Positions 52,566 to 63,563 of a DNA stretch of 64,000 bases are shown piece after piece (within the stretch, counting starts at the first letter, position 1; every line of letters begins with the position of its first letter). The stretch spans positions 1 to 64,000 of IMG/VR virus record IMGVR_UViG_3300006931_000029. The stretch is one strand, 5' to 3'. The position numbers were made by a program, and so were the translations under genes. The notes under the pieces are model-generated. The model searched no databases and was not told the DNA's origin. It was given only the letters and a program-made list of their open reading frames with translations.

Positions 52566-54047
52566 TTACTCAGCCTTCTCGGATCGCTCCGGAAGGGTGA
52601 ACTCAACCTTCTCGATGGTGTGAACCATCGCGTCCTTGTCCTGTTCCAGGAGCGACATCATCTTGAACAGCTTGTCTCCGGCGAAACCAGCGATCGCAGC
52701 CACGCGGTCCTCCGGGAAGGCCATCGTGCCCTGACCGTTTAAGTCGAAGCTGTAGACGAACGGCTTCACGCCGAACTTGCGCGTGTAAGCCGACATTGCC
52801 GAGTTGGCGTTACCTGCTCCCATGCCGCCGACCCACGTCTGCATGTCCGAGAGGATCAGCACGCGCGAGTACTTGCGGTTCATTGCCTGGATTGCTGCTG
52901 GCATGTTCGTGCCACCACCGCTGAACTGGAACCCGCGAGACAGTGACATGGTCGAGTCCTTTCGGTTGTAGTTCACGTAGTGGGCAGAGTCGTCGAAACG
53001 GATCAGGTCCGCATCCCACGCCTTGCAGATAACAGCCGCAAAAATCGATGCGATCTGAGACGGCTTGCCGGCCATCGAACCAGAAACGTCGAGGAACACG
53101 ACAGAGTCGCCCTCTAGCTTCGGAACGTTGCCGCAGGACAGGTCGATTGCGTCGTCCAGCGCACCCATAACCTTTCGGGTAGCAGATGCGTTGAGACCGC
53201 CAACGACCTCGTATGCGGTGTGAATCTGGAACGGGAACACGAGGCTCTTGTGGATGGCGTCCGCGTTGCGAAGCTGGTCGCACACGGCATCGATCAACTC
53301 GCTGTCAGCACCCGCGAGGATGTTGCGCAGATTGCGAATCAATGCCAGATAGCCGAGCTTCTTCTCGCGAATCAGCGCGGCCCATGCGGCGGCCTTCAAC
53401 TCCGCCTTGTTCTCGTCGCTCTCAGCGGCTTGACCGGCCTGCGTGAGCTTGGTCTCCCACGTGTCGGCCGGCTGGAGCTTGCCAGTCATCAACAGCTTCA
53501 ACGCCGGAGTCTCCTTCGGGCGAAGCAAGTTGACTGCGTCGATCAGCTTGAACGGCTGGCCGTCTCGGCGATACTTTGCCAGAGCGTAGGCGTCATAGCG
53601 CTGTAGCGCCGCGCCGAGACCCTTCTTCAGGGAGTTCGGAATCGGCTTGCCGTAGGTCGCCATGTAATACGCGAGAATCTCCACCGGGTCGTCGGCACGA
53701 CGAGAAACACGGTTGAAGAAGTCCTTCGTCCATGCCTCACCCTTGACAGTCTTCGCGATCTCGCCGGCCACGATGTGGCTGATCGAGCGCATGCCGAACT
53801 CGTTACGAGCGAAGACGGCGGCCTTTGCCGCGAAGAGCGGGTCGACCTTCTGGAGGAGTTCCTTGACCCGCACGATTGTGCCGGACTCGGAACGATAAAA
53901 TTGATCCTGAACAAAAGTCGTCAGCAAAATGCTGACAAACTCGAGCTTTGAGGACTGGGAATATCCCGGTCCACCTGCTGCGTTGGTGACAACGGTCCTG
54001 CCTGGGACCTTGCGTGCCACCTTCGCGGATGATGCGAACTTAGCCAT
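52566..54047 (-). CDS. rsr: Ro60/TROVE-domain RNA-binding protein (TROVE + vWA)
   Basis: N.AGG..Y, FY, AR.EFGMR, Y.LAKY, TWE..L, ALIRNLRN, S.V.PF, DVSGSM, GGT, SDMQ; AAGGA RBS. Confidence 0.92.
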   Translation of the reverse strand: MAKFASSAKVARKVPGRTVVTNAAGGPGYSQSSKLEFVSILLTTFVQDQFYRSESGTIVRVKELLQKVDPLFAAKAAVFARNEFGMRSISHIVAGEIAKTVKGEAWTKDFFNRVSRRADDPVEILAYYMATYGKPIPNSLKKGLGAALQRYDAYALAKYRRDGQPFKLIDAVNLLRPKETPALKLLMTGKLQPADTWETKLTQAGQAAESDENKAELKAAAWAALIREKKLGYLALIRNLRNILAGADSELIDAVCDQLRNADAIHKSLVFPFQIHTAYEVVGGLNASATRKVMGALDDAIDLSCGNVPKLEGDSVVFLDVSGSMAGKPSQIASIFAAVICKAWDADLIRFDDSAHYVNYNRKDSTMSLSRGFQFSGGGTNMPAAIQAMNRKYSRVLILSDMQTWVGGMGAGNANSAMSAYTRKFGVKPFVYSFDLNGQGTMAFPEDRVAAIAGFAGDKLFKMMSLLEQDKDAMVHTIEKVEFTLPERSEKAE

Positions 54048-54199
54048 GGTGTTTTTCCTTTGTTTGACTGCCACGCGGAATGCGTGGAGAATAGTTGACG
54101 CTACGGACGTTTTTGAAATTGTAAACAAAAATTTGGCGCTCGAAATGCGTTACAGGCTTCGCAATCCGATTACGGTGCCACACGCCAAACATTGCAAGA

Positions 54200-54275
54200 T
54201 GGAGCCCGCTGCCGGAATTGCACCGGCCATCTCTGGAGTACAAAGCCAGGGTCTCGCTCACTAAACGTAACGGGC
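54200..54275 (-). tRNA. tRNA-Thr(UGU)
   Basis: Hand-folded cloverleaf, encoded CCA, UGC T-loop. Confidence 0.85.
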
Positions 54276-54364
54276 AAATGACATCGCACGCGCATGTTGT
54301 TACAGCAAGCGTACCCACTGCGAAACGGTTTAGCGCTTCGATCTGCATTTCGTGCGAAGATGAT

Positions 54365-54441
54365 TGGTGGACCCAGTGGGATTTGCACCCACGATCAAAG
54401 AATTATGAGTTCTCTGCTTTGGACTGCTAAGCTACAGGTCC
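54365..54441 (-). tRNA. tRNA(CAU), probably Ile2
   Basis: GGACCUG acceptor, CU-CAU-AA loop; Ile2 versus Met inferred from body sequence. Confidence 0.8.
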
Positions 54442-54447
54442 AACAAG

Positions 54448-54804
54448 ATGATTTCTAGCCAAAGAAAAATTGTCAAAGAAAAGTTGATATTTCATCGCGG
54501 TCATAGATGCGAAGGTTGCCAGGGCACTCAATGGCGAGGAAAACCAATCCCTTTGGAACTTCATCATGAGACTGACAGTGACGAAGAAAAGGACCTTCAG
54601 CTTCTGTGTCCTAACTGTCACGCTCAAACCCCGAACTATCGAGGGCGAAACAAGAAAGCTGGAAAGATTTGGAGCAATCTCTGCTCGTGCGGTAATCGAA
54701 AACACGTGTGTTCCCCGAGTTGCAGAAGTTGTGGCGCGAAAAGAAGATGGAATGGTGCCCTTGGAGGGAGTTGCACCCTCACGACATGCGTCACTAAGGT
54801 TTAA
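54448..54804 (+). CDS. HNH (homing-type) endonuclease, antisense within the tRNA array
   Basis: CEGC, LELHH, LLCPNCHAQT. Confidence 0.75.
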   Translation: MISSQRKIVKEKLIFHRGHRCEGCQGTQWRGKPIPLELHHETDSDEEKDLQLLCPNCHAQTPNYRGRNKKAGKIWSNLCSCGNRKHVCSPSCRSCGAKRRWNGALGGSCTLTTCVTKV

Positions 54805-54836
54805 GCAAAGCGCGTCTCCTTTTCCGCCACAAGGGC
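54753..54836 (-). tRNA. tRNA-Leu(UAA)
   Basis: Long variable arm, CCA. Confidence 0.85.
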
Positions 54837-54840
54837 AAGT

Positions 54841-54926
54841 TGGTGCCGGCGACAGGAATCGCACCTGCATGGCCCGAAGACCGCTGGATTTTGAGTTCAG
54901 TGTGTATCCTATTCCACCACGCCGGC
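54841..54926 (-). tRNA. tRNA-Leu(CAA)
   Basis: Long variable arm, CCA. Confidence 0.9.
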
Positions 54927-54931
54927 AAAAT

Positions 54932-55008
54932 TGGTGCCCTCGGCGGGACTCGAACCCGCAACCTCGAGGTTAGAAAGCTCTTGCTCTAGTCCATTGAGCT
55001 ACGAGGAC
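54932..55008 (-). tRNA. tRNA-Arg(UCU)
   Basis: Canonical GG D-loop and UUC T-loop. Confidence 0.9.
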
Positions 55009-55013
55009 AAAAT

Positions 55014-55090
55014 TGGCGCCTCAGACAGGACTCGCACCTGCAACCTGCAGTTTAGGAAACCGCCGCTCTATCTAGTTGAGCTACTGAGAC
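55014..55090 (-). tRNA. tRNA-Arg(CCU)
   Basis: Cloverleaf, CCA. Confidence 0.9.
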
Positions 55091-55094
55091 AAAT

Positions 55095-55180
55095 TGGTGC
55101 CCGCGACAGGAATCGCACCTGCATGGTTTTTCAACCACTAATTTCTAAGACTAGCGTGTCTACTGTTCCACCACGCGGGC
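55095..55180 (-). tRNA. tRNA-Leu(UAG)
   Basis: Long variable arm, CCA. Confidence 0.9.
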
Positions 55181-55185
55181 AAAGA

Positions 55186-55248
55186 TGGAGGGAGCGTCCG
55201 TGCTCGGCACCCTGAGCGCTCAGCCACAACCTCAAGCTGTGGACTCCC
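55186..55248 (-). ncRNA. 63-nt CCA-ended mini-cloverleaf
   Basis: GGGAG.../...CUCCC-U-CCA closing three hairpins; no D/T consensus. Confidence 0.5.
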
Positions 55249-55259
55249 ATTTTCAAAAT

Positions 55260-55333
55260 TGGCTCCCGACCAAGGATTCGCACCTTGGCAAAACGAGTCA
55301 GAGTCGTTTGTGCTACTGTTACACCAGTCGGGA
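55260..55333 (-). tRNA. tRNA-Gln(CUG)
   Basis: U1-A72, G73, CCA. Confidence 0.9.
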
Positions 55334-55334
55334 A

Positions 55335-55429
55335 TGGCGGAGGTGAGCAGGTTCGCACTGCGCCGAGCTTTACCCCGGGCCATGTTTAGCAAACATGTGG
55401 GACTCCTAGTTGTCCACCTTTCTACCTCC
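55335..55429 (-). tRNA. tRNA-Ser(GCU), atypical 8/4 fold
   Basis: 8-bp acceptor with bulged A, 4-bp T stem, long variable arm, G73. Confidence 0.8.
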
Positions 55430-55433
55430 AAAA

Positions 55434-55508
55434 TGGTGCCCGCACCGGGAATCGCACCCGGCTCTCCGCCTTGAGAGGGCGGCGAACTAACTGATATTCG
55501 ATGCGGGC
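55434..55508 (-). tRNA. tRNA-Glu(CUC)
   Basis: Cloverleaf, CCA. Confidence 0.88.
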
Positions 55509-55513
55509 AAAAA

Positions 55514-55598
55514 TGGTCGGCATGACAGGAATCGCACCTGCACGGATTTTATCCAACGCCTTCTGAGGACGCCGTGTCTACTGTTCCACCACATGCCG
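55514..55598 (-). tRNA. tRNA-Leu(CAG)
   Basis: Long variable arm, CCA. Confidence 0.9.
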
Positions 55599-55603
55599 AA
55601 AAA

Positions 55604-55679
55604 TGGTCCTCGCTGTAGGATTCGCACCCACAACTTCCTCCGTGTGAAAGAGGCACTCTAACTGTTGAGTTAAGCGAGG
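55604..55679 (-). tRNA. tRNA-Val(CAC)
   Basis: Cloverleaf, CCA. Confidence 0.9.
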
Positions 55680-55683
55680 AAAA

Positions 55684-55878
55684 TTATTCGACGGCTTCGC
55701 AGATGTCGCGAATGAGGGCAAAGTATGCGATGCATTCACCACCTAGTTTCGTCCCTGGAAGAGCATACTGTCCTGAGCATTGGCGCTCGAGGATAGTCCC
55801 CTTTGGGTAAGCAATGCCGACCTTCAAGTCTAGGTAGTCTTCAGTCAGTTGGACCGTTGCTGGTTTTTGAGTCATCAC
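55684..55878 (-). CDS. Small hypothetical protein inside the tRNA array
   Basis: Fills the gap between RNA genes, same strand. Confidence 0.5.
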   Translation of the reverse strand: MMTQKPATVQLTEDYLDLKVGIAYPKGTILERQCSGQYALPGTKLGGECIAYFALIRDICEAVE

Positions 55879-55892
55879 TTTTAGAATAAATC

Positions 55893-55974
55893 GTGCAGAA
55901 AGCGAAGGGCTGTTCGTTGGTTAGTCGCCGTTGAACAGGTAGCATCGTTGGACCCGGACTAACGGGTTCTGCAC
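55893..55974 (-). ncRNA. Three-way-junction RNA with potential kissing loops
   Basis: 8-bp terminal stem; loops carry GUUAGUC and GACUAAC. Confidence 0.55.
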
Positions 55975-55978
55975 AAAG

Positions 55979-56071
55979 TGGCGGAGAGGTGCAGGTTCGC
56001 ACTGCGCACGATTAAACGTGTCCGAGTTTTCGAGGCTCGTGGGACTCCTGATTGTCCTCCTTACTCTCTCC
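55979..56071 (-). tRNA. tRNA-Ser(CGA), atypical 8/4 fold
   Basis: Same architecture as Ser(GCU). Confidence 0.8.
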
Positions 56072-56072
56072 G

Positions 56073-56162
56073 TGGCGGAAGGTAAAGGAGTTGCACCCTA
56101 GCCGGTTTCCCGACTGATCCGCTTTCCAAGCGGTCCCCACTCTACAGCAGGTCCTACCTTCC
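56073..56162 (-). tRNA. tRNA-Ser(GGA)
   Basis: Long variable arm, G73, irregular D arm. Confidence 0.78.
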
Positions 56163-56166
56163 AAAG

Positions 56167-56244
56167 TGGTGCACGCGGAGGGATTTGAACCCCCAACCCT
56201 TCGTTCCGAAGACGAATGCTCTGGTCCAATTGAGCTACGCGTGC
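56167..56244 (-). tRNA. tRNA-Arg(UCG)
   Basis: Canonical elbow, CCA. Confidence 0.9.
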
Positions 56245-56245
56245 A

Positions 56246-56333
56246 TGGCGGAAGGTGTAGGATTCAAACCCACGGCCGGTTTCCCGACTCCGAGGTTCAA
56301 GCTCGGTGCAATAATTCGCTCTGCCAACCTTCC
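56246..56333 (-). tRNA. tRNA-Ser(UGA)
   Basis: Long variable arm; UUUGAAU T-loop with GA in the D-loop. Confidence 0.88.
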
Positions 56334-56340
56334 AAGTTTT

Positions 56341-56546
56341 CGAACCAGTGTAGCCTGGATTCTGTTTTATCCGCACATTTCTCTAAGCCGCTACCACGAC
56401 GTTTGAACGGGAAGCACTACCCTGACGTCTTAATTTGCGTTGCACCTACCGAGGTCCGCGAGCGTTAACTCTCCCTCGTGCTGCTTTGGTGTCCTAGCTT
56501 CCTCAGGCCGATACACTTTCTCGACCCGCGTGCAGTCCTGTATTCG
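56341..56546 (-). ncRNA. rnpB: Minimal RNase P RNA-like gene
   Basis: Ordered motifs GAGGAAGCUAGGAC, GCAACGCAAAU, UAGAGAAAUG, AAACAGAAUCCAGGCUA; the ends pair as P1. Confidence 0.72.
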
Positions 56547-56961
56547 AAGATGGTTCTTGCGCCAATTTGATGCTAAAAACATCAAAAATGCTGCCGATTG
56601 ATTCAGGCGAAAAGTCTGACGGTTTTCGAATCATGACGGCAAAATCGATCTTGCGCACGGCATCTATCAATTTTTCGTCAATATATCCGGACACAATGCT
56701 GACCGGAGTCATTATTTTGTTGGCTCTCATTTCCCGAAAAACGTCTAAGCCGCTACCATCTGGTAGCTTCATGTCCAACAGCACCACGTGAAACTCTCGC
56801 TGCGCCAGTTGATTGATCGCTTCCTGGCACGTCTTAGCCCAGAACACGTGGCATCTGTAACTCTTTGAGGCGTTAATCAACAACTCCGCCAGTAGCTCAT
56901 CGTCCTCAACGAGAAGCACGTCTTTTATGAGATTCTTAGCGTATTCCGCAAGAGTTTTCAT
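56503..56961 (-). CDS. Single-domain response regulator (REC/CheY-like)
   Basis: VLLVEDD, LLDMKLPDGSG, VSG, KP. Confidence 0.88.
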   Translation of the reverse strand: MKTLAEYAKNLIKDVLLVEDDELLAELLINASKSYRCHVFWAKTCQEAINQLAQREFHVVLLDMKLPDGSGLDVFREMRANKIMTPVSIVSGYIDEKLIDAVRKIDFAVMIRKPSDFSPESIGSIFDVFSIKLAQEPSSNTGLHAGRESVSA

Positions 56962-57006
56962 TAAAACAAATATAGACCATGGAACGACGAACCGTTCCCT
57001 GAGAAG

Positions 57007-57080
57007 TGGCACCCGCGCAAGGATTCGCACCTTGGCAAAGTGAGTCAAAGTCACTTGTGCTACTGTTACACCACACGGGT
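57007..57080 (-). tRNA. tRNA-Gln(UUG)
   Basis: Cloverleaf, CCA. Confidence 0.9.
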
Positions 57081-57275
57081 AAAAACCCCGTCGACGGTCC
57101 GCGATCCATCTGGCAGGCAGGCGCATTACGACTCAGCGACGATCAATCGCCTACCGTGACTCGGTCGACTACGAATCTGCGTCCCCTGAACGGAGACAAA
57201 AGCTTTGCCGGCGGCGATCGCATCCGCAGCTTGGGTTCCTCGAGCTCGCCCAAGACTTGCTACTCATCGGCAAAA

Positions 57276-57351
57276 TGGTCCTCGCGGCAGGATTCGCACC
57301 TGCGACCTCTTCCATGTCAAGGAAGCGCGCTAACTGCTGTGCTACGCGAGG
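57276..57351 (-). tRNA. tRNA-Val(GAC)
   Basis: Cloverleaf, CCA. Confidence 0.9.
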
Positions 57352-57352
57352 A

Positions 57353-57429
57353 TGGCTCCGGCAGAAGGGTTCGCACCTTCATCTTCTCGGTTAACAGCCG
57401 AGCGCTCTACTAAGTTGAGCTACACCGAA
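57353..57429 (-). tRNA. tRNA-Asn(GUU), copy with A18/G55 elbow
   Basis: Cloverleaf, G73, CCA. Confidence 0.88.
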
Positions 57430-57435
57430 ACAAAA

Positions 57436-57512
57436 TGGTCCTCTCAGCCGGAGTCGCACCGACAACCTCGTCCTTCGCAGAGACGCGCTCTATCTAGTTG
57501 AGCTATGAGAGG
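57436..57512 (-). tRNA. tRNA-Arg(GCG)
   Basis: Loop CU-GCG-AA. Confidence 0.88.
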
Positions 57513-57516
57513 AAAT

Positions 57517-57593
57517 TGGGGCGGCTAACGGGATTCGCACCCGCGGTCCTCTGATTCACAATCAGATGCTTTTACTGCTAAGCTATAGCCGCC
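57517..57593 (-). tRNA. tRNA-His(GUG)
   Basis: Encoded G-1 and C73. Confidence 0.9.
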
Positions 57594-57599
57594 ATAAAT

Positions 57600-57684
57600 T
57601 GGTGCGGATAGGGAGAATCGCACTCCCATGGCTGTCAACCGTTACGTTCTCAACGTAGTGTGTCTACTGTTCCACCATATCCGC
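57600..57684 (-). tRNA. tRNA-Leu(GAG)
   Basis: Long variable arm, CCA. Confidence 0.9.
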
Positions 57685-57854
57685 AAGAGCTGGGATTTGC
57701 ACCCTTTACCGCCTCGCTCAGGCGTCTTGTCCGACGATGACTTTTGCTACTCGCAACCATCGTCATTATTTTAGGTTGCTTTGGCGCACCACCGACTGAT
57801 CCTTCGAGAGCTGACGACAGCATTAAGGACCCTCTATGAACAAAATGAACAAAA

Positions 57855-57930
57855 TGGAGCCTAAGAAGGGATTTGCACCCATGACCCACGCTTTACGAAA
57901 GCGTTGCTCTACTAACTGAGCTACTTAGGC
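57855..57930 (-). tRNA. tRNA-Thr(CGU)
   Basis: Cloverleaf, CCA. Confidence 0.9.
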
Positions 57931-57934
57931 AAAG

Positions 57935-58159
57935 TTAAGCTTCACCGCCTCGAGGCGGTGCGGGACGCTTGATCCCAAAGGTTAGGTTCTCGAATGCCCT
58001 ACAGTCGTTCGAGTCAATGGACTTGAACCTGCCGTCATCTAGCTGAACCAAGAAAATTGGATTGTGGTCGATGCCGTAATCGATCATCAGGATTGCGCGT
58101 CCAGGACCGAGAGGTGTCTGCACCCATATCGGCGCTGAGAACTCGTGGGTAATGGTCAT
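57935..58159 (-). CDS. Small conserved phage protein inside the tRNA array
   Basis: 74 aa, TPLG.G.A...IDYG..HN. Confidence 0.6.
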   Translation of the reverse strand: MTITHEFSAPIWVQTPLGPGRAILMIDYGIDHNPIFLVQLDDGRFKSIDSNDCRAFENLTFGIKRPAPPRGGEA

Positions 58160-58179
58160 TCCACTACCAGAACGCAAAA

Positions 58180-58255
58180 TGGAGCTGAACATGGGACTTG
58201 CACCCATCATCACCTGCTTACCAAGCAGGGTCCGCGCTATCTCGGAGTGATCAGC
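58180..58255 (-). tRNA. tRNA-Thr(GGU)
   Basis: Cloverleaf, CCA, atypical D arm. Confidence 0.85.
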
Positions 58256-58257
58256 AA

Positions 58258-58344
58258 TGGTCCGCCTGGAAGGACTTGCACCTACGTAGACCCGAAGGTC
58301 AATGCGTTTACAGCGCATCGCAATTGCTACTCTGCCACAGGCGG
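58258..58344 (-). tRNA. tRNA-Tyr(GUA) with C1-G72
   Basis: Long variable arm, A73. Confidence 0.9.
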
Positions 58345-58349
58345 ATAAA

Positions 58350-58425
58350 TGGAAGCACCGACGGGATTTGCACCCGTGACCTTGGGCTTATGAGTCCCGC
58401 GCTCTACTAACTGAGCTACAGTGCC
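58350..58425 (-). tRNA. tRNA-Met(CAU), elongator-like
   Basis: GGC acceptor start, CU-CAU-AA. Confidence 0.82.
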
Positions 58426-58433
58426 ACTGAGAA

Positions 58434-58523
58434 TGGTGGAACGGGAGGGACTTGCACCCCCGACGGTGGGTTCACCACATGGGCTTAAAAGGCCCGACCA
58501 ATCGCTGCTATGGGGACCGTTCC
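58434..58523 (-). tRNA. tRNA with Lys anticodon (UUU) and a long variable arm
   Basis: CU-UUU-AA loop; GUGG/CCAC variable stem. Confidence 0.8.
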
Positions 58524-58529
58524 AAAAGT

Positions 58530-58604
58530 TGGCTGGGAAGGTTGGGATCGAACCAACGACCATCGAGTTAACAGCTCGCCGCTCTGCCACTGAGCTACAT
58601 CCCA
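58530..58604 (-). tRNA. tRNA-Asn(GUU), canonical-elbow copy
   Basis: GG D-loop, UUC T-loop. Confidence 0.9.
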
Positions 58605-58612
58605 ATGAAAAA

Positions 58613-58798
58613 TTTGCCTTGGCGTGGACCTTCAGCAGTGACCGCAGTCCAACCTCGCTTTTCCCGCTGAGCTTTCTGTTTCGACCGAAGTCTTCCGCCG
58701 CGATGTCTCGAACGACCAGGCCGGTATTAGCGACCCGAAGCGGTATGAACAACCTAGCGCGCCACACTTGAGTCTCCCTCGTAGAGCTCCAAGGCAAA
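58613..58798 (-). ncRNA. ~186-nt structured RNA of unknown family
   Basis: 10-bp terminal pairing UUUGCCUUGG/CCAAGGCAAA, UUCG-capped hairpins, fills the tRNA gap. Confidence 0.55.
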
Positions 58799-58799
58799 A

Positions 58800-58875
58800 T
58801 GGCGGGAATGAAGGGATTCGCACCCTCGGTCTCTTGCGTGACAGGCAAGCGCTTTAACTGCTAAGCTACACCCCC
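58800..58875 (-). tRNA. tRNA-Asp(GUC)
   Basis: G73, CCA. Confidence 0.9.
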
Positions 58876-58882
58876 GTGAAAA

Positions 58883-58990
58883 TGGTTGAGGCCCAGCTTG
58901 TCGTCTGCGCTATGCCCAGCTGGAATCGAACCGAGTCTAGTTAGGGACTTGCACCCCGCTTCGCGACAAGATCGCACCGCACGATCCTCA
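58883..58990 (-). ncRNA. CCA-ended RNA with two T-loop hairpins
   Basis: UGAGG/CCUCA-ACCA, CUUGUCG/CGACAAG, GGG-UGCAAGU-CCC and GG-UUCGAUU-CC. Confidence 0.6.
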
Positions 58991-58994
58991 AAAA

Positions 58995-59071
58995 TGGTCC
59001 GGACGACAGGATTCGCACCTGCGGCCTCTTGATCCCAAATCAAGCGTTCTACTAGGCTGAACTACATCCGG
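58995..59071 (-). tRNA. tRNA-Pro(UGG)
   Basis: C1-G72, A73. Confidence 0.9.
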
Positions 59072-59077
59072 ATAAAT

Positions 59078-59187
59078 TGTGCCGAAGACGTTTCTGCATT
59101 TGTAAGCCACTTGGTTCCCTGCGGGAATTGCTGGTAACAGGGAGACGGTTTCGAACCCGTGTCTTCATGACCCCCATCGCTGACACA
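59078..59187 (-). ncRNA. Circularly permuted tRNA-like RNA on a terminal stem
   Basis: UGUGUC/GGCACA ends, GAAGAC/GUCUUC, T arm first, then UCCCUG..ACCA..CAGGGA. Confidence 0.5.
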
Positions 59188-59191
59188 AAAG

Positions 59192-59270
59192 TGGGAGCAG
59201 GAGTTGGATTTGAACCAACGATTTCGACCTTATGAGGATCGCGAGGACGGCCATGCTCCTCTACCCTGCC
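59192..59270 (-). tRNA. tRNA(CAU), initiator-like body
   Basis: A11-U24 D stem, UUCAAAU; lacks the three G-C anticodon-stem pairs. Confidence 0.75.
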
Positions 59271-59421
59271 ACAAAAAGATTATTGACACGACTCGCACGG
59301 ACCATCGTCTAAGTTGCAAGTTTTTGGCTTCTCGCCTTCAGGCGCAGGAGCATCTTGCACGAACTCGCCGATGTCGTCATCGGGAGACAGAGTCGACGGT
59401 TTTGGATCAGTCATGCGCTAT

Positions 59422-59598
59422 CTACAAGTTCAATCCGTGCAGAACTCCGATTTTGTCCAGCGCATAAACCACGAAGATCAGAGCCAAGATAGCACCGATG
59501 ATTTTCAACGGCGTACCTTGAGCGAACTGACCAGCTACCCAGAAGATCAGGTAGAGCACGAGACCGACTATGAGGATGACGATTAGTGATTCGATCAT
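59422..59598 (-). CDS. 58-aa two-helix membrane protein
   Basis: Two hydrophobic segments; GAGGAGG upstream. Confidence 0.7.
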   Translation of the reverse strand: MIESLIVILIVGLVLYLIFWVAGQFAQGTPLKIIGAILALIFVVYALDKIGVLHGLNL

Positions 59599-59634
59599 GG
59601 TAAACAGACATAGTCTGCCCCTCCTCGTTCCAAA

Positions 59635-59710
59635 TGGTGGGAACAGCTGGAGTTGCACCAGCGACACGCAGATTTTCAGTCTGCTGCTCTACTGACTGAG
59701 CTATGTCCCC
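59635..59710 (-). tRNA. tRNA-Phe(GAA)
   Basis: Cloverleaf, CCA. Confidence 0.92.
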
Positions 59711-59714
59711 AAAG

Positions 59715-59847
59715 TGGTGGGAAGTGCAGGATTCGAACCTACTTGCTTGGCTTTTCAGGGCTTTGCTTTTCCGAAGTAACCCAGTCGGTCACTGCGATCT
59801 TGCGACCGAGAATTAGGTGACTAGGTGTTGTCTTGTTAAGACTTCCC
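59715..59847 (-). ncRNA. tRNA body with Y-like module replacing the anticodon arm (chimera 1)
   Basis: GGGAAGU/ACUUCCC-ACCA, T arm, internal ..UUCUC-GGUC-GCAA-GAUC-GCAGUGA-N9-UUACUUC. Confidence 0.72.
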
Positions 59848-59851
59848 AAAG

Positions 59852-59927
59852 TGGCACGGACGGCAGGAATTGCACCTGCGACCTGGAGATTTGGAGTTTC
59901 CCGCTCTACTAATTGAGCTACGTCCGT
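59852..59927 (-). tRNA. tRNA-Trp(CCA)
   Basis: A1-U72, G73. Confidence 0.9.
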
Positions 59928-59928
59928 A

Positions 59929-60004
59929 TGGAGAGGGATGTCGGAATTGCACCGACGCATGACGCTTTTGCAGAACGTTGCCTTTCTGACTTGGCTAATC
60001 CCTC
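59929..60004 (-). tRNA. tRNA-Cys(GCA)
   Basis: U73, CCA. Confidence 0.88.
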
Positions 60005-60008
60005 AAAG

Positions 60009-60083
60009 TGGTGGAAGCAGTGGGACTTGCACCCACAACCCTTCGCTTAAGAGGCGAGAGCTCTACTATTGAGCTATACTTCC
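60009..60083 (-). tRNA. tRNA-Lys(CUU)
   Basis: Cloverleaf, CCA. Confidence 0.9.
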
Positions 60084-60088
60084 AAAAA

Positions 60089-60218
60089 TGGTGCGCGCGC
60101 CTGGATTCGAACCAAGTCTAATCTTTTCGTAGAAGAAGTAACCCAATCGGTCACTGCGTCTTGCGACGAGAATAAGGTGACTGAGATATTTGTTGTGCTA
60201 CCATTACACTACACGCGC
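60089..60218 (-). ncRNA. tRNA body with Y-like module in the anticodon arm (chimera 2)
   Basis: Intact acceptor, D and T arms plus CCA; permuted module closed by a GCAA loop. Confidence 0.75.
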
Positions 60219-60225
60219 AAAAGCT

Positions 60226-60360
60226 TTCCGAGAGAAAAACGAGGACGGTAGAAGACGCGGTGTTAAGTCGCGTTGCCCAACCATTAGGCGTATTCTCCAG
60301 TTTTGGCGGAGGATATTGGATTTGAACCAATGAAGTAACCGTTTCTCTCACTACTCGGAA
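60226..60360 (-). ncRNA. YrlA-like RNA with a permuted tRNA domain
   Basis: UUCCGAG/CUCGGAA ends, UAGUGA..UUACUUC, then T arm, acceptor 3' strand + GCCA, spacer, acceptor 5' strand, D arm. Confidence 0.72.
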
Positions 60361-60362
60361 AA

Positions 60363-60490
60363 TGGTGGACTGCACGAGATTCGAACTCGGACGCTCGCCC
60401 CCGTAGGGCCGCGAGCGGTTCTACCTGCCGTGGCGGACGGATTGATTACCGTCGGACTTGATTCGTCGTTACGCGTTGGCGATACAGCCC
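60363..60490 (-). ncRNA. 128-nt tRNA-like RNA with Ala identity and no anticodon arm
   Basis: GGGCUGU/GCAGUCC-ACCA (G3-U70, A73), UUCGAAU T arm. Confidence 0.65.
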
Positions 60491-60494
60491 GAAA

Positions 60495-60572
60495 TGGTCG
60501 GTCTGGCCGGATTCGCACCGGCGATCTTTCCGCCCCGAACGGAACGCGATAACTAGGCTACGCTACAGACCG
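60495..60572 (-). tRNA. tRNA-Pro(CGG)
   Basis: C1-G72, A73. Confidence 0.9.
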
Positions 60573-60576
60573 AAAA

Positions 60577-60652
60577 TGGTCCTCCCGATAGGATTCGCAC
60601 CTACGACCCCACGCTTATCAAGCGCGTGCTCTAACTGCTGAGCTACGAGAGG
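60577..60652 (-). tRNA. tRNA-Ile(GAU)
   Basis: Cloverleaf, CCA. Confidence 0.9.
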
Positions 60653-60656
60653 AAAA

Positions 60657-60792
60657 TGGTGCAGCGTGTAGGATTCGAACCCACGTAAGCGGTTTGGATT
60701 TGAAGTAACTCAATCTTCACTGCGTCTTGCGACGAGAAAAGTCAGACTGAGACTTGTTAGGACCGCTGTCCTGGCCACTAGACGAACGCTGC
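60657..60792 (-). ncRNA. Complete tRNA body with Y-like module inserted in the anticodon loop (chimera 3)
   Basis: Anticodon stem GCGGU/ACCGC intact around the module. Confidence 0.78.
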
Positions 60793-60800
60793 AAATTTTT

Positions 60801-60929
60801 CCGTGAGAACAATGGACTGGGAGGTGAAGACCTTTCGGCCCTCGGGTGGAATTGAACCACCATTGATTCCTTAATAGGGAATTGCTTTACCATTAAGCAA
60901 CGAAGTATCCCATATTCCTCACTGCACGG
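60801..60929 (-). ncRNA. Y-like RNA enclosing an unpermuted D/anticodon/T cloverleaf
   Basis: CCGUG/CACGG ends, CAGUGA..AUACUUC, then D arm, AUUCC-CUAUUAA-GGAAU and T arm. Confidence 0.7.
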
Positions 60930-60939
60930 AAATTGTAAT

Positions 60940-61001
60940 CGGGAGAAAAGAATGTCGACGGGTGTATTTCCCCAAGAAGTATCCGTAGACGTCACTACCC
61001 G
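60940..61001 (-). ncRNA. Minimal Y-like module
   Basis: CGGG-UAGUGA..AUACUUC..UUUUCU-CCCG. Confidence 0.7.
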
Positions 61002-61010
61002 AAAAAGCTC

Positions 61011-61082
61011 TCTGCGAGAATAAAGTGGACTCGGTGTTTTTCGATGTTGATGTTGAAGTAACCGAACCCGTCACTGCGCAGA
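61011..61082 (-). ncRNA. Minimal Y-like module
   Basis: UCUGCG-CAGUGA..UUACUUC..UAUUCU-CGCAGA. Confidence 0.7.
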
Positions 61083-61085
61083 AAT

Positions 61086-61162
61086 TGGTGGACCGGATGG
61101 GAGTTGCACCCACCACACGGTGCTTGCAAAGCACTGTCGCCGCTAACGGTACATGCCGGCCC
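61086..61162 (-). tRNA. tRNA-Ala(UGC)
   Basis: G3-U70, irregular D arm. Confidence 0.85.
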
Positions 61163-61169
61163 AATAAAG

Positions 61170-61247
61170 TGGTGCGTCAAGAGGGAATTGCACCCACGAC
61201 ATCCTCTTTGGAAGAGAGGTGCTCTAAACTAACTGAGCTATTGACGC
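61170..61247 (-). tRNA. tRNA-Gly(UCC), A73
   Basis: GCG acceptor start, CU-UCC-AA. Confidence 0.9.
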
Positions 61248-61251
61248 GAAA

Positions 61252-61311
61252 CGGGAGAAAAGTCGACAAGGTGTTTTTCATACAAAGAAGTAACCCTGTC
61301 ATCACTGCCCG
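61252..61311 (-). ncRNA. Minimal Y-like module
   Basis: CGGG-CAGUGA-UGACAGGG-UUACUUC..ACCUUGUCG-ACUUUUCU-CCCG. Confidence 0.7.
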
Positions 61312-61315
61312 AAGA

Positions 61316-61394
61316 TGGTGCGTGTGGCGGGATTCGCACCCACGAAATCCTCGTTGGCAACGAGGCGCTGTAGACTAGGCTGAGCCACACACGC
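61316..61394 (-). tRNA. tRNA-Gly(GCC), A73
   Basis: Cloverleaf, CCA. Confidence 0.9.
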
Positions 61395-61398
61395 AAAT

Positions 61399-61474
61399 TG
61401 GTGCCCGCGACGAGATTCGCACTCGTGTTCTCGCCTTGAAAGGGCGGCGTCCTGGTCTCCTAGACGACGCGGGC
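61399..61474 (-). tRNA. tRNA-Glu(UUC)
   Basis: Cloverleaf, CCA. Confidence 0.9.
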
Positions 61475-61475
61475 A

Positions 61476-61549
61476 TGGCGCACGAGGATGGAATTGAACC
61501 ACCGACCAACCAGTGGAAACCGGCTGCTCTTTCTCTGAGCTACTCGTGC
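61476..61549 (-). tRNA. tRNA-like gene with 6-nt anticodon loop (undetermined)
   Basis: GCCGG-UUUCCA-CUGGU; other arms intact. Confidence 0.65.
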
Positions 61550-62123: not shown

Positions 62124-62209
62124 TGGTGGCGAAAGAAGGGATCGAACCTCCGACCTGGTCGTCCATTTTTAAGGTGGCCGTCCATGCTCTACCGCTAAGC
62201 TATTTCGCC
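62124..62209 (-). ncRNA. tRNA-like RNA with extended anticodon arm
   Basis: Perfect acceptor, D and T arms plus CCA; ~29-nt anticodon arm. Confidence 0.65.
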
Positions 62210-62475: not shown

Positions 62476-62830
62476 TGGTGGAGATGGCGGGAGTTGAACC
62501 CGCGTGCTAAAAGAGAACCGAATCTGAGTCTACGCGCGTGTCCTATTTTAATGTCCAGGCGGACCTATCTTTGGCTGAGTTTTTGAGTTCCGCCTCAGCC
62601 GGCAGCGAAATCAGTAGCGTAGTTTTTACGCAGCACGATCTACCCCGCTCATCTTAATCGTGCCACGCGCAGCCTAATTAGGCCGCGAGACGGAGCTCGT
62701 TGGAACGAGCGAACGCCTTGACAATGGTGTTGCCATTTGTGGTTTGCCAAGTCTTGTTATGGAGGTCGACCTAGCAGTCTCCAGCGCGCATCAGGTATCT
62801 GTCTCCTAAAGTAGAATCCAGAACATCCCC
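62476..62830 (-). ncRNA. ssrA: tmRNA, tag (A)GNTIVKAFARSNELRLAA
   Basis: GGGGAUG/CAUCUCC-ACCA with G3-U70, GGAUUC 5' motif, T arm, tag ORF 62678..62734 ending LAA-TAA. Confidence 0.93.
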
Positions 62831-62927: not shown

Positions 62928-63563
62928 TCACGCATTTTGTTCAACTGGCCGAACGCCGTGAATTCCCTGCTTCAGGACATACCAGTAGAGTTTTCCTTCG
63001 AGTCGAATCTGGTTGGCGCGGCTCTTGTCGACGTAAATTTTGTCGCCGATCTTGATTTGGGCGAGCACCGGGTCTTCGCTCGATGGCAGAAGATTTCCGA
63101 TTTGCACGACCTCAAACTCTGGAGGTGGAATGGCCGAATCCGGCAGATAGAGACCGCCGATCATGTCGATCTTGATGTCACGAACGAGCACCCAGTCGCC
63201 GAGCACATGAAAATTTTCAAGCGTGATCTGCGGAGAATCCAGCTTCGCGAATGCGTCTCCTTGATGCATGATCATCACGGGCTGACGACGGTCACCTTCA
63301 CCGACAAAATGGGTCACGCCCATTTCGAACATCTTGTTGCATTGGTAGATGACGATGTCGCCGACCTTGACGGCAATTTCGACCGTGTCTCCGATGGACG
63401 CAACTCGGCCAAGCCGATGGACTTGGTTGGCATTGGAGGGCATCAGGATGATGCCAGTCGCTTCTTCCTGCACAGCGGTGAGAGCGACTCGGTGTTTGAC
63501 TGGACGCACGCAGCTTCTCAGGTCAATCTCTGCGGGTTTGAAAGGGACGACGTTGGAACTCAT
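62928..63563 (-). CDS. Tandem GroES-like co-chaperonin
   Basis: Two repeats: RP..HRV..GIILMP..V.SIG..VKVGD and LGDWVLV..GGLYLP..VVQIG..IKIGD. Confidence 0.8.
   Translation of the reverse strand: MSSNVVPFKPAEIDLRSCVRPVKHRVALTAVQEEATGIILMPSNANQVHRLGRVASIGDTVEIAVKVGDIVIYQCNKMFEMGVTHFVGEGDRRQPVMIMHQGDAFAKLDSPQITLENFHVLGDWVLVRDIKIDMIGGLYLPDSAIPPPEFEVVQIGNLLPSSEDPVLAQIKIGDKIYVDKSRANQIRLEGKLYWYVLKQGIHGVRPVEQNA

Follow-up and report, generated by a model that had tools for sequence, protein, structure and literature searches.

Replacement of the G18-pseudouridine-55 elbow contact by a co-varying A18-G55 pair in the tRNA genes of a soil phage

Introduction

[quoted passage not shown] The outer G19-C56 face is the surface on which elbow readers, such as the ribosomal L1 stalk, RNase P and T-boxes, stack (PMC4810234). 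Outside tRNA, the standard T-loop module of riboswitches combines a UGNRA loop with an intercalated adenosine. Here, we analysed a 64,000-nucleotide window (positions 1 to 64,000 of IMG/VR record IMGVR_UViG_3300006931_000029) of a 225-kb soil phage in which nearly every tRNA gene carries A18 and G55. The same replacement was found to be recurrent in many uncultivated large phages and in a few cellular tRNAs, and it is apparently undescribed, as no paper describing this pair was found.

The tRNA gene array and its elbow sequences

The array (54200-61549, minus strand) contains about 40 tRNA and tRNA-like genes, all on the minus strand and almost all with encoded CCA, which were identified by ARAGORN, by Rfam RF00005 hits of 35-69 bits, and by parsing of the loops. 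Of the 35 ARAGORN tRNAs that end in an encoded CCA, 29 have the T-loop T54-G55-C56-R57-A58, and in all 29 the D-loop has A-G at the place of G18-G19. The 29 genes (with D-loop and T-loop sequences in that order) are as follows:
54365-54441 (-), tRNA-Met(CAU), AGCAGTCCA, TGCAAAT
54753-54836 (-), tRNA-Leu(UAA), GAAAAGGAGA (AG then G20, by register with the other Leu tRNAs), TGCAACT
54841-54926 (-), tRNA-Leu(CAA), ..AATAGGATA.., TGCGATT
55014-55090 (-), tRNA-Arg(CCU), AACTAGATA, TGCGAGT
55095-55180 (-), tRNA-Leu(UAG), GAACAGTAGA, TGCGATT
55260-55333 (-), tRNA-Gln(CUG), AACAGTA, TGCGAAT
55434-55508 (-), tRNA-Glu(CUC), ATCAGTTA, TGCGATT
55514-55598 (-), tRNA-Leu(CAG), GAACAGTAGA, TGCGATT
55604-55679 (-), tRNA-Val(CAC), AACAGTTA, TGCGAAT
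57007-57080 (-), tRNA-Gln(UUG), AACAGTA, TGCGAAT
57276-57351 (-), tRNA-Val(GAC), AGCAGTTA, TGCGAAT
57353-57429 (-), tRNA-Asn(GUU) copy 1, AACTTAGTA, TGCGAAC
57436-57512 (-), tRNA-Arg(GCG), AACTAGATA, TGCGACT
57517-57592 (-), tRNA-His(GUG), AGCAGTAA, TGCGAAT
57600-57684 (-), tRNA-Leu(GAG), GAACAGTAGA, TGCGATT
57855-57930 (-), tRNA-Thr(CGU), AGTTAGTA, TGCAAAT
58258-58344 (-), tRNA-Tyr(GUA), AGTAGCAA, TGCAAGT
58350-58425 (-), tRNA-Met(CAU), AGTTAGTA, TGCAAAT
58800-58875 (-), tRNA-Asp(GUC), AGCAGTTA, TGCGAAT
58995-59071 (-), tRNA-Pro(UGG), AGCCTAGTA, TGCGAAT
59635-59710 (-), tRNA-Phe(GAA), AGTCAGTA, TGCAACT; 85% identical to a canonical tRNA-Phe in another locus, L099, that differs at positions 18 and 55
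59852-59927 (-), tRNA-Trp(CCA), AATTAGTA, TGCAATT
59929-60004 (-), tRNA-Cys(GCA), AAGTCAGAAA, TGCAATT
60009-60083 (-), tRNA-Lys(CUU), AATAGTA, TGCAAGT
60495-60572 (-), tRNA-Pro(CGG), AGCCTAGTTA, TGCGAAT
60577-60652 (-), tRNA-Ile(GAU), AGCAGTTA, TGCGAAT
61170-61247 (-), tRNA-Gly(UCC), AGTTAGTTTA, TGCAATT
61316-61394 (-), tRNA-Gly(GCC), AGCCTAGTCTA, TGCGAAT
61399-61474 (-), tRNA-Glu(UUC), AGGAGACCA (A14 G15 G17 A18 G19), TGCGAAT

Four more tRNA-like genes, which were missed by ARAGORN, also have UGC T-loops and an AG in the D region, giving 33 UGC T-arms in total:
61086-61162 (-), tRNA-Ala(UGC)-like gene with G3:U70, an irregular D-arm (D region containing TTAG) and G55; T-arm GTGGG-TGCAACT-CCCAT
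58434-58523 (-), class-II-shaped tRNA-like gene with a CUUUUAA anticodon loop and G55; T-arm GGGGG-TGCAAGT-CCCTC, with a weak Rfam tRNA-Sec hit (28.7 bits)
58180-58255 (-), tRNA-Thr(GGU)-like gene with A18/G55; D-loop AGATAGCG, T-arm ATGGG-TGCAAGT-CCCAT
54200-54275 (-), tRNA-like gene with a 9-nt anticodon loop and G55; Rfam tRNA hit of 35 bits, T-arm GCCGG-TGCAATT-CCGGC

The tRNAs with U55 keep G18:
54932-55008 (-), tRNA-Arg(UCU), canonical G18 G19 / U55 C56; D-loop AATGGACTA, T-loop TTCGAGT
56167-56244 (-), tRNA-Arg(UCG), canonical elbow; D-loop AATTGGACCA, T-loop TTCAAAT
56246-56333 (-), tRNA-Ser(UGA), in which G18-U55 is kept but G19-C56 is replaced by A19-U56; D-loop AGCGAATTA, T-loop TTTGAAT (T-loop UUUGAAU with D-loop AGCGAAUUA)
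58530-58604 (-), tRNA-Asn(GUU) copy 2, canonical elbow; D-loop AGTGGCA, T-loop TTCGATC
59192-59270 (-), tRNA-Met(CAU) with an unusual D-arm and a canonical elbow; D-loop AGCATGGCCGT, T-loop TTCAAAT, without the GGG/CCC initiator signature

Chance is excluded as an explanation for this association (29/0 against 1/6 in the window, Fisher p=3.6e-6; across unrelated loci, p=2e-249). The observation made in the sequence-only reading is thus confirmed: its count of 36 UGC T-loops among 41 tRNAs is slightly high, but the substance holds, and the four UUC exceptions that it named (Arg-UCU, Arg-UCG, Asn at 58530 and an initiator-like tRNA, the Met at 59192) all keep GG, as does its description of Ser(UGA) hold. 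The sequence is not an assembly artefact, because the same DNA is present, partly with zero differences, in contigs of several independent rhizosphere and soil runs and in a second JGI contig of identical length. No RNA run was found to contain this phage.

Other RNA and protein genes in and around the array

The tRNA mimics, comprising four Y-RNA-like/tRNA chimeras, the elements at 60837, 61476 and 62127, and the tmRNA, keep the UUC T-loop. These and other genes of the region are as follows:
59715-60792 (-), interval holding the four chimeras, interleaved with the ordinary tRNA genes Trp, Cys, Lys, Pro and Ile listed above
62476-62830 (-), tmRNA (ARAGORN; Rfam, 95 bits) with a canonical UUC T-loop, T-arm GCGGG-TTCAACT-CCCGC
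56335-56548 (-), miniature RNase P RNA-like gene (catalytic domain only), abutting the 5' end of tRNA-Ser
52566-54128 (-), gene for a Ro60/Rsr-like TROVE + VWA protein next to the array (Pfam TROVE, 3.7e-16; PHROG 850)

Each chimera has acceptor, T-arm and CCA ends around a shared module (CTCGTCGCAAGACGCAGTGA..GGGTTACTTC), as seen in an alignment, and the T-arms are located at 59726, 60100, 60315 and 60668. A canonical GG D-loop is seen in two of them (m60668 and m60100). An Rfam tRNA hit covers 60092-60218, whereas Rfam YrlA is not matched here and is matched only partially in the relatives L141 and L296. The RNase P RNA-like gene matches RF00010 at 47 bits (E=4e-12), and the match spans model positions 1-367 with about 140 specificity-domain positions deleted. 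This gene is conserved in L324, one of the relatives found using the TROVE protein (48 bits; 96% identity against about 86% for the flank), with one compensatory pair. The HNH proteins embedded in the array look like DNA homing or nicking enzymes, and no T-loop nuclease was found.

Distribution of the A18-G55 pair in phages and cells

Pattern scans of IMG/VR and GTDB were performed with position 18 left free. Among about 1,240 distinct tRNAs from these loci, G55 goes with AG 438 times against GG 15 times, and U55 goes with GG 514 times against AG 6 times (p=2e-249); the test over genome loci gave p=4e-43. Mismatched combinations are rare (15 and 6 among about 970), and the pair is under selection as a pair. 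The association holds whatever Watson-Crick pair sits at 19-56: with U56, G56 or A56, the D-loop carries A19, C19 or U19, in both the G55 and the U55 backgrounds. In addition, A57 is enriched next to G55 (295 A / 274 G against 145 A / 462 G, p=4e-23), which we take as co-adaptation. About 30 phage loci are at least 60% G55. Initiator-like tRNAs stay canonical.

The relatives L323, L324 and L274 (73-99% TROVE identity) keep the pattern and the same exceptions, which we take as purifying selection. Arg(UCU) is also canonical in L323 and L324 and is U55 with A19-U56 in L274, and the states of Arg(UCG) and Ser(UGA) are the same in L324. The array does not result from recent duplication, because the highest identity between tRNAs for different amino acids within the array is 77% and 18 of the 29 are closer to a canonical tRNA for the same amino acid elsewhere.

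Interpretation of the A18-G55 elbow

The analysis itself establishes the T-loop sequence U54-G55-C56-R57-A58, the adenine at position 18, and the retention of everything else that defines the elbow, namely U54, A58, G53-C61, R57 and, above all, the outer G19-C56 pair; what these residues do in the folded and working tRNA is inferred, in part by analogy with riboswitch T-loops, and no structure, melting data, charging data or tRNA-seq exists for any A18/G55 tRNA. In the explanation that we favour, with a probability of roughly 0.6, these are working elongator tRNAs whose elbow uses an alternative but isosteric tertiary contact. They are otherwise normal tRNAs, with Rfam tRNA scores of 42-69 bits against a threshold of 29 and with encoded CCA. 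A18-G55 most likely does the same job as G18-Psi55 without a pseudouridine, since G55 cannot become one, and would also remove the substrate bases of TruB (U55) and TrmH (G18). Because the outer face is unchanged, the ribosome, EF-Tu, RNase P and most synthetases should accept these tRNAs. However, some partners may be lost, as TrmK appears to recognise G18 and U55 themselves: a G18U-U55G double mutant did not restore methylation (PMC9801127).

The reason why nearly the whole set, covering 19 amino acids, was converted in this phage lineage is the least certain step and remains unresolved. Most likely, an elbow whose stability does not depend on host T-loop and D-loop modification enzymes is advantageous for tRNAs made in bulk during infection, and in this view a few tRNAs would be held canonical by their own partners (initiator-type Met in related arrays, Ser-UGA and Arg-UCU). 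Escape from a factor that depends on U55 is also possible, and both are inferences. The benefit of Psi55 in bacteria is modest, and independence from it may therefore be too weak a force to convert about 30 genes. Mimicry of the host, which is unknown, is not formally excluded, but indirect evidence argues against it: the tmRNA, tRNA mimics and several tRNAs of the phage itself are canonical, an isolated Vibrio phage carries 2 A18/G55 tRNAs, and a more distant relative with a TROVE-linked array is fully canonical. 

The interpretation given in the sequence-only reading, i.e. selection for an orthogonal elbow that needs no Psi55 or evades elbow- or T-loop-recognising nucleases, with canonical mimics as possible decoys, is only partly supported. 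The 18/55 covariation is real and these tRNAs cannot carry Psi55, but an orthogonal elbow is not supported, given the retained outer face and the occurrence of the pair in cells described below, while nuclease evasion and the decoy role are conjectures.

Comparison with known tRNAs and T-loops

Well-studied isolated jumbo phages with large arrays are fully canonical (24/24 in XacN1 and 21/21 in CcrSC), indicating that bulk tRNA production alone does not demand the replacement. On the other hand, the chromosomal tRNA-Phe(GAA) of 36 Pelagibacteraceae species representatives has identical A18/G55 loops, as do tRNA-Ala of DPANN archaea and tRNA-Thr of Elusimicrobia, from which we infer that the pair works with ordinary translation machinery. 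Structurally, the loop corresponds to the common UGNRA-plus-adenosine module rather than to something exotic: the T-loops of FMN and cobalamin riboswitches are UGNRA with an almost invariant intercalating adenosine hydrogen-bonded to the sugar edge of the G at loop position 2, and tRNA is the exception with U (bioRxiv 10.1101/2022.12.26.521914).

The phage genome and its tRNA array

The window is the first 64 kb of the IMG/VR contig 3300006931_000029, which is 224,954 bp long, and a JGI metagenome contig of identical length contains the same sequence at rotated coordinates, which is consistent with a complete, circularly permuted genome. It represents a large phage with T4-like modules, namely a gp20-type portal, gp25 and gp9/10 baseplate proteins, a dCMP deaminase and a thymidylate-synthase-like gene, and its GC content is about 53%. 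The phage is very distant from any isolated phage: the portal protein is at most 25% identical to that of any isolated phage, and a megablast search returned no match. A search with a glycosyltransferase returned viral clusters only. Contigs from at least eight independent rhizosphere and soil DNA runs contain the array region, and four further runs yielded pieces with zero differences, with no variant at positions 18 or 55 among the subset of variants inspected. The sequence is therefore real. None of the RNA runs searched contained the array.

ARAGORN and Rfam placed 36-38 tRNA genes and a tmRNA on the minus strand between 54.2 and 62.8 kb. Positions were numbered from the encoded 3' CCA using the loop assignments of ARAGORN. 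Of the 35 CCA-ended tRNAs, 29 have the T-loop T54-G55-C56-R57-A58, and all 29 carry A-G where G18-G19 belongs; tRNA-Phe, for example, has the D-loop AGUCAGUA and the T-loop UGCAACU, against AGUCGGUA and UUCGAUU in Escherichia coli. Four further tRNA-like genes that were missed by ARAGORN also combine UGC with an AG in the D region, one of them being a tRNA-Ala(UGC) with G3:U70. The G55 set covers 19 amino acids. The U55 tRNAs (Arg-UCU, Arg-UCG, the second Asn and an odd Met) keep GG, whereas tRNA-Ser(UGA) keeps G18-U55 but has A19-U56. A UUC T-loop is also present in four chimeras with tRNA ends around a shared internal module (two of which show a canonical GG D-loop), in three other irregular tRNA-like genes and in the tmRNA. 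Fisher's exact test on the window gave p=3.6e-6. The observation made in the sequence-only reading thus holds in every qualitative statement, although its count of 36 of 41 tRNAs is a little high.

In the other sequence features of the family these genes conform to transfer RNA. All 29 score 42-69 bits with Rfam RF00005, against a gathering score of 29, and ARAGORN calls them with 7-nt anticodon loops. All 29 T-arms read T-G-C-R-A-N-N between a stem that ends in G and one that starts with C, so that U54, A58, G53-C61, the 7-nt loop and purine 57 are conserved, and C56 and G19 are present in all 29. Only G18 and U55, which are regarded as universally conserved, are replaced, in 29 of the 35 genes, and they are described here as tRNAs with a variant elbow.

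Distribution of the A18/G55 pair

IMG/VR and one genome per GTDB species were scanned for a D-stem and G55 T-loop pattern that left position 18 free, and IMG/VR was also scanned for two neighbouring G55 T-loops. All tRNAs in the fetched loci were parsed in the same way, giving about 1,240 distinct tRNAs outside the window.

Combinations of position 55 with the D-loop dinucleotide at 18-19 in tRNAs outside the window.
Viral loci: G55 with AG, 438; G55 with GG, 15; U55 with GG, 514; U55 with AG, 6; Fisher p=2e-249
Genome loci: G55 with AG, 83; G55 with GG, 5; U55 with GG, 88; U55 with AG, 1; Fisher p=4e-43

Several of the G55-with-GG calls that were checked come from ambiguous D-loops such as AGGAG, in which the caller prefers GG. 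The 18-55 rule is independent of the neighbouring pair: 19 and 56 covary as Watson-Crick pairs, and when position 56 is U, G or A, the D-loop has A19, C19 or U19, in both backgrounds, as exemplified by A18-C19 with UGG in a tRNA-Leu of L274, a syntenic relative. Position 57 shifts toward A next to G55 (p=4e-23). The loops TGCGA and TGCAA, which are the only two found in the 29 window tRNAs, account for 527 of 569 G55,C56 loops elsewhere. A third, rarer elbow type, C55 with G18 (T-loop TCCGA..), was seen in 18 distinct tRNAs of the viral loci.

Most phage contigs have one A18/G55 tRNA among about five canonical ones, but about 30 loci have at least 60% G55, many of which lie on contigs of 65-275 kb (e.g. 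the viral loci L285, 27/27; L250, 18/18; L296, 34/37; L264, 15/15; and L277, 13/13). Several small MAG contigs show the same state and look like mis-binned phage (e.g. L214, 24/25, and L141, 13/15). Arrays with intermediate fractions also exist (L287, 11/21; L298, 9/27; and L310, 21/31).

Related loci and the state of their tRNAs.
L323: 98% DNA identity to the window; same pattern, the Arg-UCU exception is kept; the locus covers only six tRNAs
L324: ~86% DNA identity and 94% TROVE identity; same pattern and all three exceptions (Arg-UCU, Arg-UCG and Ser-UGA)
L274: 73% TROVE identity, syntenic; 10 of 11 G55, its Arg-UCU being U55 with A19-U56
L141: 49% TROVE identity; G55-rich, 13/15
L322: 46% TROVE identity; canonical, 8/8

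The state has therefore changed within this wider group. The tRNA-Arg(UCU) gene (54932-55008, minus strand) is replaced by a clearly different, still canonical allele (L323 179-256 and L324 3239-3316) in strains that are otherwise ~98% identical, and contig joints at 54943 and 55008 in several runs fit cassette exchange at this position.

In cells, the chromosomal tRNA-Phe(GAA) of 36 Pelagibacteraceae species representatives has the same A18/G55 pair, with near-identical loop sequences across them, and tRNA-Ala of several DPANN archaea and tRNA-Thr(GGU) of Elusimicrobia also use the pair. Among isolated phages, XacN1 (24/24) and CcrSC (21/21) are canonical, whereas the 349-kb Vibrio phage 2.275.O has two A18/G55 tRNAs, Tyr and Cys. 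BLAST hits to phi92, a T4-like phage and S-RIM8 turned out to be canonical tRNAs.

The exceptions within G55-rich arrays are not random. All seven strict initiator-type tRNA-Met genes (1-72 mismatch, GGG/CCC anticodon stem; found in L085, L214, L262, L269, L296 and L304) are U55/G18, even where 85-100% of the array is A18/G55 and against about 85% G55 overall. Ser-UGA is U55 in 5 of 6, Asn-GUU in 5 of 20 and Arg-UCU in 4 of 15. These results point to partner-specific constraints on some tRNAs and a directional pull on the rest.

Features neighbouring the array

52566-54128, minus strand: Ro60/Rsr-like TROVE-VWA protein gene flanking the array
59715-60792, minus strand: four chimeric RNAs, each with tRNA acceptor, T-arm and CCA ends around a shared ~45-nt module that contains a GNRA hairpin
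56335-56548, minus strand: 214-nt RNase P RNA-like gene, catalytic domain only
51806-52462, minus strand: gene for a ~200-aa HNH protein
54448-54804, plus strand: small HNH homing-type endonuclease gene between tRNA-Met and tRNA-Leu, on the strand opposite to the tRNAs
58434-58523, 54200-54275, 61476-61549, 60837-60907 and 62127-62209, all minus strand: irregular tRNA-like genes, namely a class-II-shaped one with a CUUUUAA anticodon loop, one with a 9-nt anticodon loop, one with a 6-nt loop and no GG or AG register, a CCA-less 'Asn-AUU', and one with a long insertion in the anticodon region
62476-62830, minus strand: tmRNA (tag GNTIVKAFARSNELRLAA)
62928-63563, minus strand: gene for a 211-aa protein with a C-terminal GroES (Cpn10) domain, beside the tmRNA
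24450-24983, minus strand: gene for a 2H-phosphoesterase/LigT-like protein with a weak Acb1-like match

The chimeric RNAs next to the Ro60/Rsr-like gene are not matched by Rfam YrlA in the window, but this model partly matches in the relatives L141 (4324-4393) and L296 (5706-5784). The irregular tRNA-like genes could be suppressors, frameshifters or mimics, and the LigT-like protein could act on 2',3'-cyclic phosphate RNA ends or on cyclic-nucleotide signals.

The 214-nt RNA directly abuts the 5' end of tRNA-Ser, and its first ~45 nt overlap the 3' end of the response-regulator ORF 56503-57126. It matches bacterial RNase P RNA type A (RF00010) end to end, over model positions 1-367 (E=4e-12, 47 bits), but below the Rfam threshold of 100 bits. 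The elements of the catalytic core (P1-P4, CR-I, CR-V, J18/2 and P15) were found, GAGGAA, ACAGAAUCC..GGCUA and AGAGAAAUG being present and the P4 strands being complementary. In contrast, the whole specificity domain (P7-P14, with the T-loop-binding J11/12-J12/13), the part that binds the tRNA elbow, is deleted, about 140 model positions being replaced by about 32 nt. It is thus referred to as RNase P-like and catalytic-domain only, not as a family member by the threshold of Rfam. L324 has the same element (1526-1737, plus strand), again followed directly by a tRNA; it is 96% identical there, where the surrounding DNA is about 86% identical, with one G-C to A-U compensatory change. The element is not a general companion of G55 arrays, since none was found in seven G55-rich loci or in any other fetched locus apart from L324. 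No paper on phage-encoded RNase P RNA was found.

The larger HNH protein was considered as a candidate T-loop nuclease. It has a conserved N-terminal 'LVLNxNWQPI' beta-rich domain without a PDB match and a Cas9/McrA-like HNH domain; the 266-aa ORF with a TTG start is probably too long, and the likely start is M49. Homologues recur inside or beside tRNA arrays that contain A18/G55 tRNAs (L141, L245, L264, L285, L287, L290, L296, L262, L076, L097, L115 and L123), and occur in 11 of 30 G55-rich array loci against 3 of 44 G55-poor ones (p=0.002, not corrected for relatedness or duplicate loci). However, only the HNH domain matches anything, namely Cas9, IscB and McrA-type DNA nucleases, and there is no evidence for RNA cleavage, so this reading was rejected. 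The second, small HNH protein is a homing-type enzyme with relatives in other phage tRNA arrays, including that of a T4-like coliphage.

Interpretation of the variant elbow

In tRNA, base 18 intercalates between 57 and 58 and makes a single hydrogen bond to Psi55, and the exposed face of the elbow is the G19-C56 pair, on which the L1 stalk, RNase P and T-boxes stack (PMC4810234; PMC7912444). Outside tRNA, the T-loop motif is typically U-G-N-R-A, and an adenosine intercalates between positions 4 and 5 and makes two hydrogen bonds to the sugar edge of the G at position 2; tRNA is singled out as the exception, with U at position 2 (bioRxiv 10.1101/2022.12.26.521914). The A18/G55 tRNAs therefore appear to use the common version of the motif, which explains the strict covariation. 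The loop sequences and the almost perfect covariation of A18 with G55 are direct observations, and the reading as the generic motif is regarded as well supported, whereas the contact geometry in tRNA is inferred from covariation, the processing, aminoacylation and use of these tRNAs in translation are inferred from conserved cellular tRNAs with the same elbow, and any reason for the array-wide conversion is inference only.

The interpretation given in the sequence-only reading, selection for an orthogonal elbow, is only partly supported: the elbow is not 'orthogonal', since its outer face and its T-stem are unchanged and essential cellular tRNAs carry the same pair. What does change is the inside of the elbow: there is no U55 for TruB and no G18 for TrmH, and the same probably holds for other enzymes that read these bases, as TrmK appears to recognise G18 and U55 themselves (PMC9801127).

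Possible causes of the array-wide conversion

Two mechanical explanations were rejected. The palindrome TTCGAA of canonical T-loops is not avoided, occurring 36 times in the window against 37 expected; a G57A change alone would remove the site, and other G55-rich arrays keep TTCGAAT in their U55 tRNAs. Recent duplication of one founder tRNA with anticodon switching is ruled out because the highest identity between tRNAs for different amino acids in the array is 77%, and 18 of 29 are closer to canonical tRNAs for the same amino acid elsewhere; the window tRNA-Phe is 85% identical to a canonical phage tRNA-Phe that differs at 18 and 55.

Selection for an elbow whose folding does not depend on host modification enzymes is favoured here, although the present evidence does not discriminate it from two rivals. 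The main rival, itself rather unlikely, is escape from, or immunity to, a factor that needs U55/Psi55 or G18, which could be a host T-loop-cleaving toxin or defence nuclease, or a phage enzyme that disables host tRNAs while sparing the phage's own pool. The strongly lineage-specific distribution among phages, from 0 to 100% of an array with many above 85%, fits a lineage-specific conflict better than a universal folding benefit; the converted tRNAs would be sufficient to replace almost a whole pool, and the swap is much more prominent in phage arrays than in cellular genomes, where single isoacceptors are affected. Phage tRNAs escape anticodon nucleases through sequence changes, and a Burkholderia CDI toxin is reported to cut between T54 and Psi55. 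However, no candidate nuclease was found, the two HNH proteins in or beside the array resembling DNA homing and nicking enzymes; the phage keeps several canonical tRNAs, a tmRNA and tRNA mimics, which the same factor would hit; and related G55-rich arrays keep their initiator tRNAs canonical. A near-neutral alternative fixed by history is somewhat less likely still. In this view, phage tRNAs are redundant with host tRNAs, so that the unfit intermediate can be crossed, A18/G55 genes would simply be inherited once a lineage has many of them, and array-wide occurrence would reflect descent and relaxed constraint rather than an advantage. Single A18/G55 tRNAs scattered through many unrelated phages, arrays with intermediate fractions, the presence of the pair in cells and the state shared by descent among close relatives are in its favour. 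On the other hand, about 30 separate isoacceptor lineages in one genome all went the same way without any sign of recent duplication, the exceptions are non-random, other TROVE-linked arrays differ completely (L322 and L141), and drift alone predicts a mix, not 85-100%.

It is very unlikely, though not excluded, that the soil host itself uses A18/G55 in most tRNAs and the phage merely copies it. Related contigs were binned with Verrucomicrobia and Planctomycetota MAGs, but in the GTDB scan cellular contigs show single A18/G55 isoacceptors among canonical neighbours, and the G55-rich arrays sit on short, phage-like contigs, apart from one mixed array (5 of 18) on a 222-kb Kofleriaceae contig. 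In addition, the tmRNA, tRNA mimics and seven tRNAs of the phage are canonical, phage 2.275.O has its two A18/G55 tRNAs on a Vibrio host, and two chromosomal Planctomycetota tRNAs seen in passing are canonical. Least likely is that the G55 genes are decoys or pseudogenes: the array does contain several irregular tRNA-like genes, but the G55 genes have full cloverleaves, correct identity elements (e.g. G3:U70 in Ala and A20 in Arg), encoded CCA and high Rfam scores, they are conserved in relatives, and essential cellular tRNAs have the same elbow. A more speculative possibility, doubtful but less so than these two, is that the elbow is used as a self/non-self mark on tRNA. A clade of large soil and aquatic phages would bring a nearly complete pool of U55-less, G18-less tRNAs, and in this phage also its own RNase P RNA that lacks the elbow-reading specificity domain, so that translation could continue while a host defence nuclease or a phage-made factor that depends on U55/Psi55 or G18 removes or blocks the canonical host pool; the canonical tRNA mimics next to the Ro60 gene would be baits or regulators in that conflict.

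U55/Psi55 and G18 are textbook 'universal' tRNA residues, and Psi55 is described as the most conserved RNA modification. The precise alternative, A18-G55, in whole sets of phage tRNAs and in conserved cellular tRNAs provides a natural experiment on what Psi55, TruB and Gm18 are for, and indicates, with the geometry inferred, that the tRNA elbow can be built with the generic T-loop module. No description of this pair in tRNA was found in the literature, although the texts searched omitted most subscription journals and an older mention cannot be ruled out. The two tRNA-Asn copies of the window and the Phe tRNAs with either elbow are ready-made pairs for biochemistry, the pair offers a marker for a class of uncultivated large phages, and it may be useful for engineering tRNAs that fold without modification. 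If the array-wide conversion reflects a conflict over tRNA, it would add the elbow to the anticodon loop as a battleground between phages and hosts.

Comparison with known systems

The window tRNAs share with canonical bacterial and phage elongator tRNAs (RF00005; arrays of jumbo phages such as XacN1 and CcrSC) the cloverleaf, anticodon set, encoded CCA, U54-A58, G53-C61, R57 and G19-C56, and are clustered in a large array beside homing-type HNH genes, as in T4-like and other large phages, but G18-Psi55 is replaced by A18-G55 in about 85% of the genes, whereas the XacN1 and CcrSC arrays examined are 100% canonical. With the T-loop/T-loop-receptor module of FMN and cobalamin riboswitches they share loop positions 1-5 (U-G-N-R-A) and an adenine as the partner, which in the riboswitches intercalates between positions 4 and 5 and pairs with G2 (bioRxiv 10.1101/2022.12.26.521914); here, however, the module sits in a tRNA, and position 3 (C56) additionally forms the Watson-Crick pair with G19 that makes the exposed elbow face. 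Staphylococcus non-proteinogenic tRNA-Gly, tRNA-Pyl and many metazoan mitochondrial tRNAs (PMC4574755, PMC1851642 and PMC2777451) are likewise natural departures from G18G19/T-Psi-C, but those tRNAs lose or loosen the D-loop/T-loop interaction and serve special roles or reduced systems, whereas here the interaction appears to be kept through a precise compensatory pair across a near-complete set of elongator tRNAs. Phage tRNAs that escape host anticodon nucleases through anticodon-loop changes (T5-type) also differ systematically from host tRNAs, and the idea that such differences serve conflict is the same, but the change here is at the elbow, no matching nuclease is known or was found, and the same variant occurs in essential cellular tRNAs. 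Finally, the chromosomal tRNA-Phe(GAA) of Pelagibacteraceae, tRNA-Ala of DPANN archaea and tRNA-Thr(GGU) of Elusimicrobia have identical 18/55 identities and loop sequences of the same type (e.g. AGGAGTA/TGCGAAT), but there a single isoacceptor per genome is affected among canonical neighbours, whereas in this phage the pair is array-wide.
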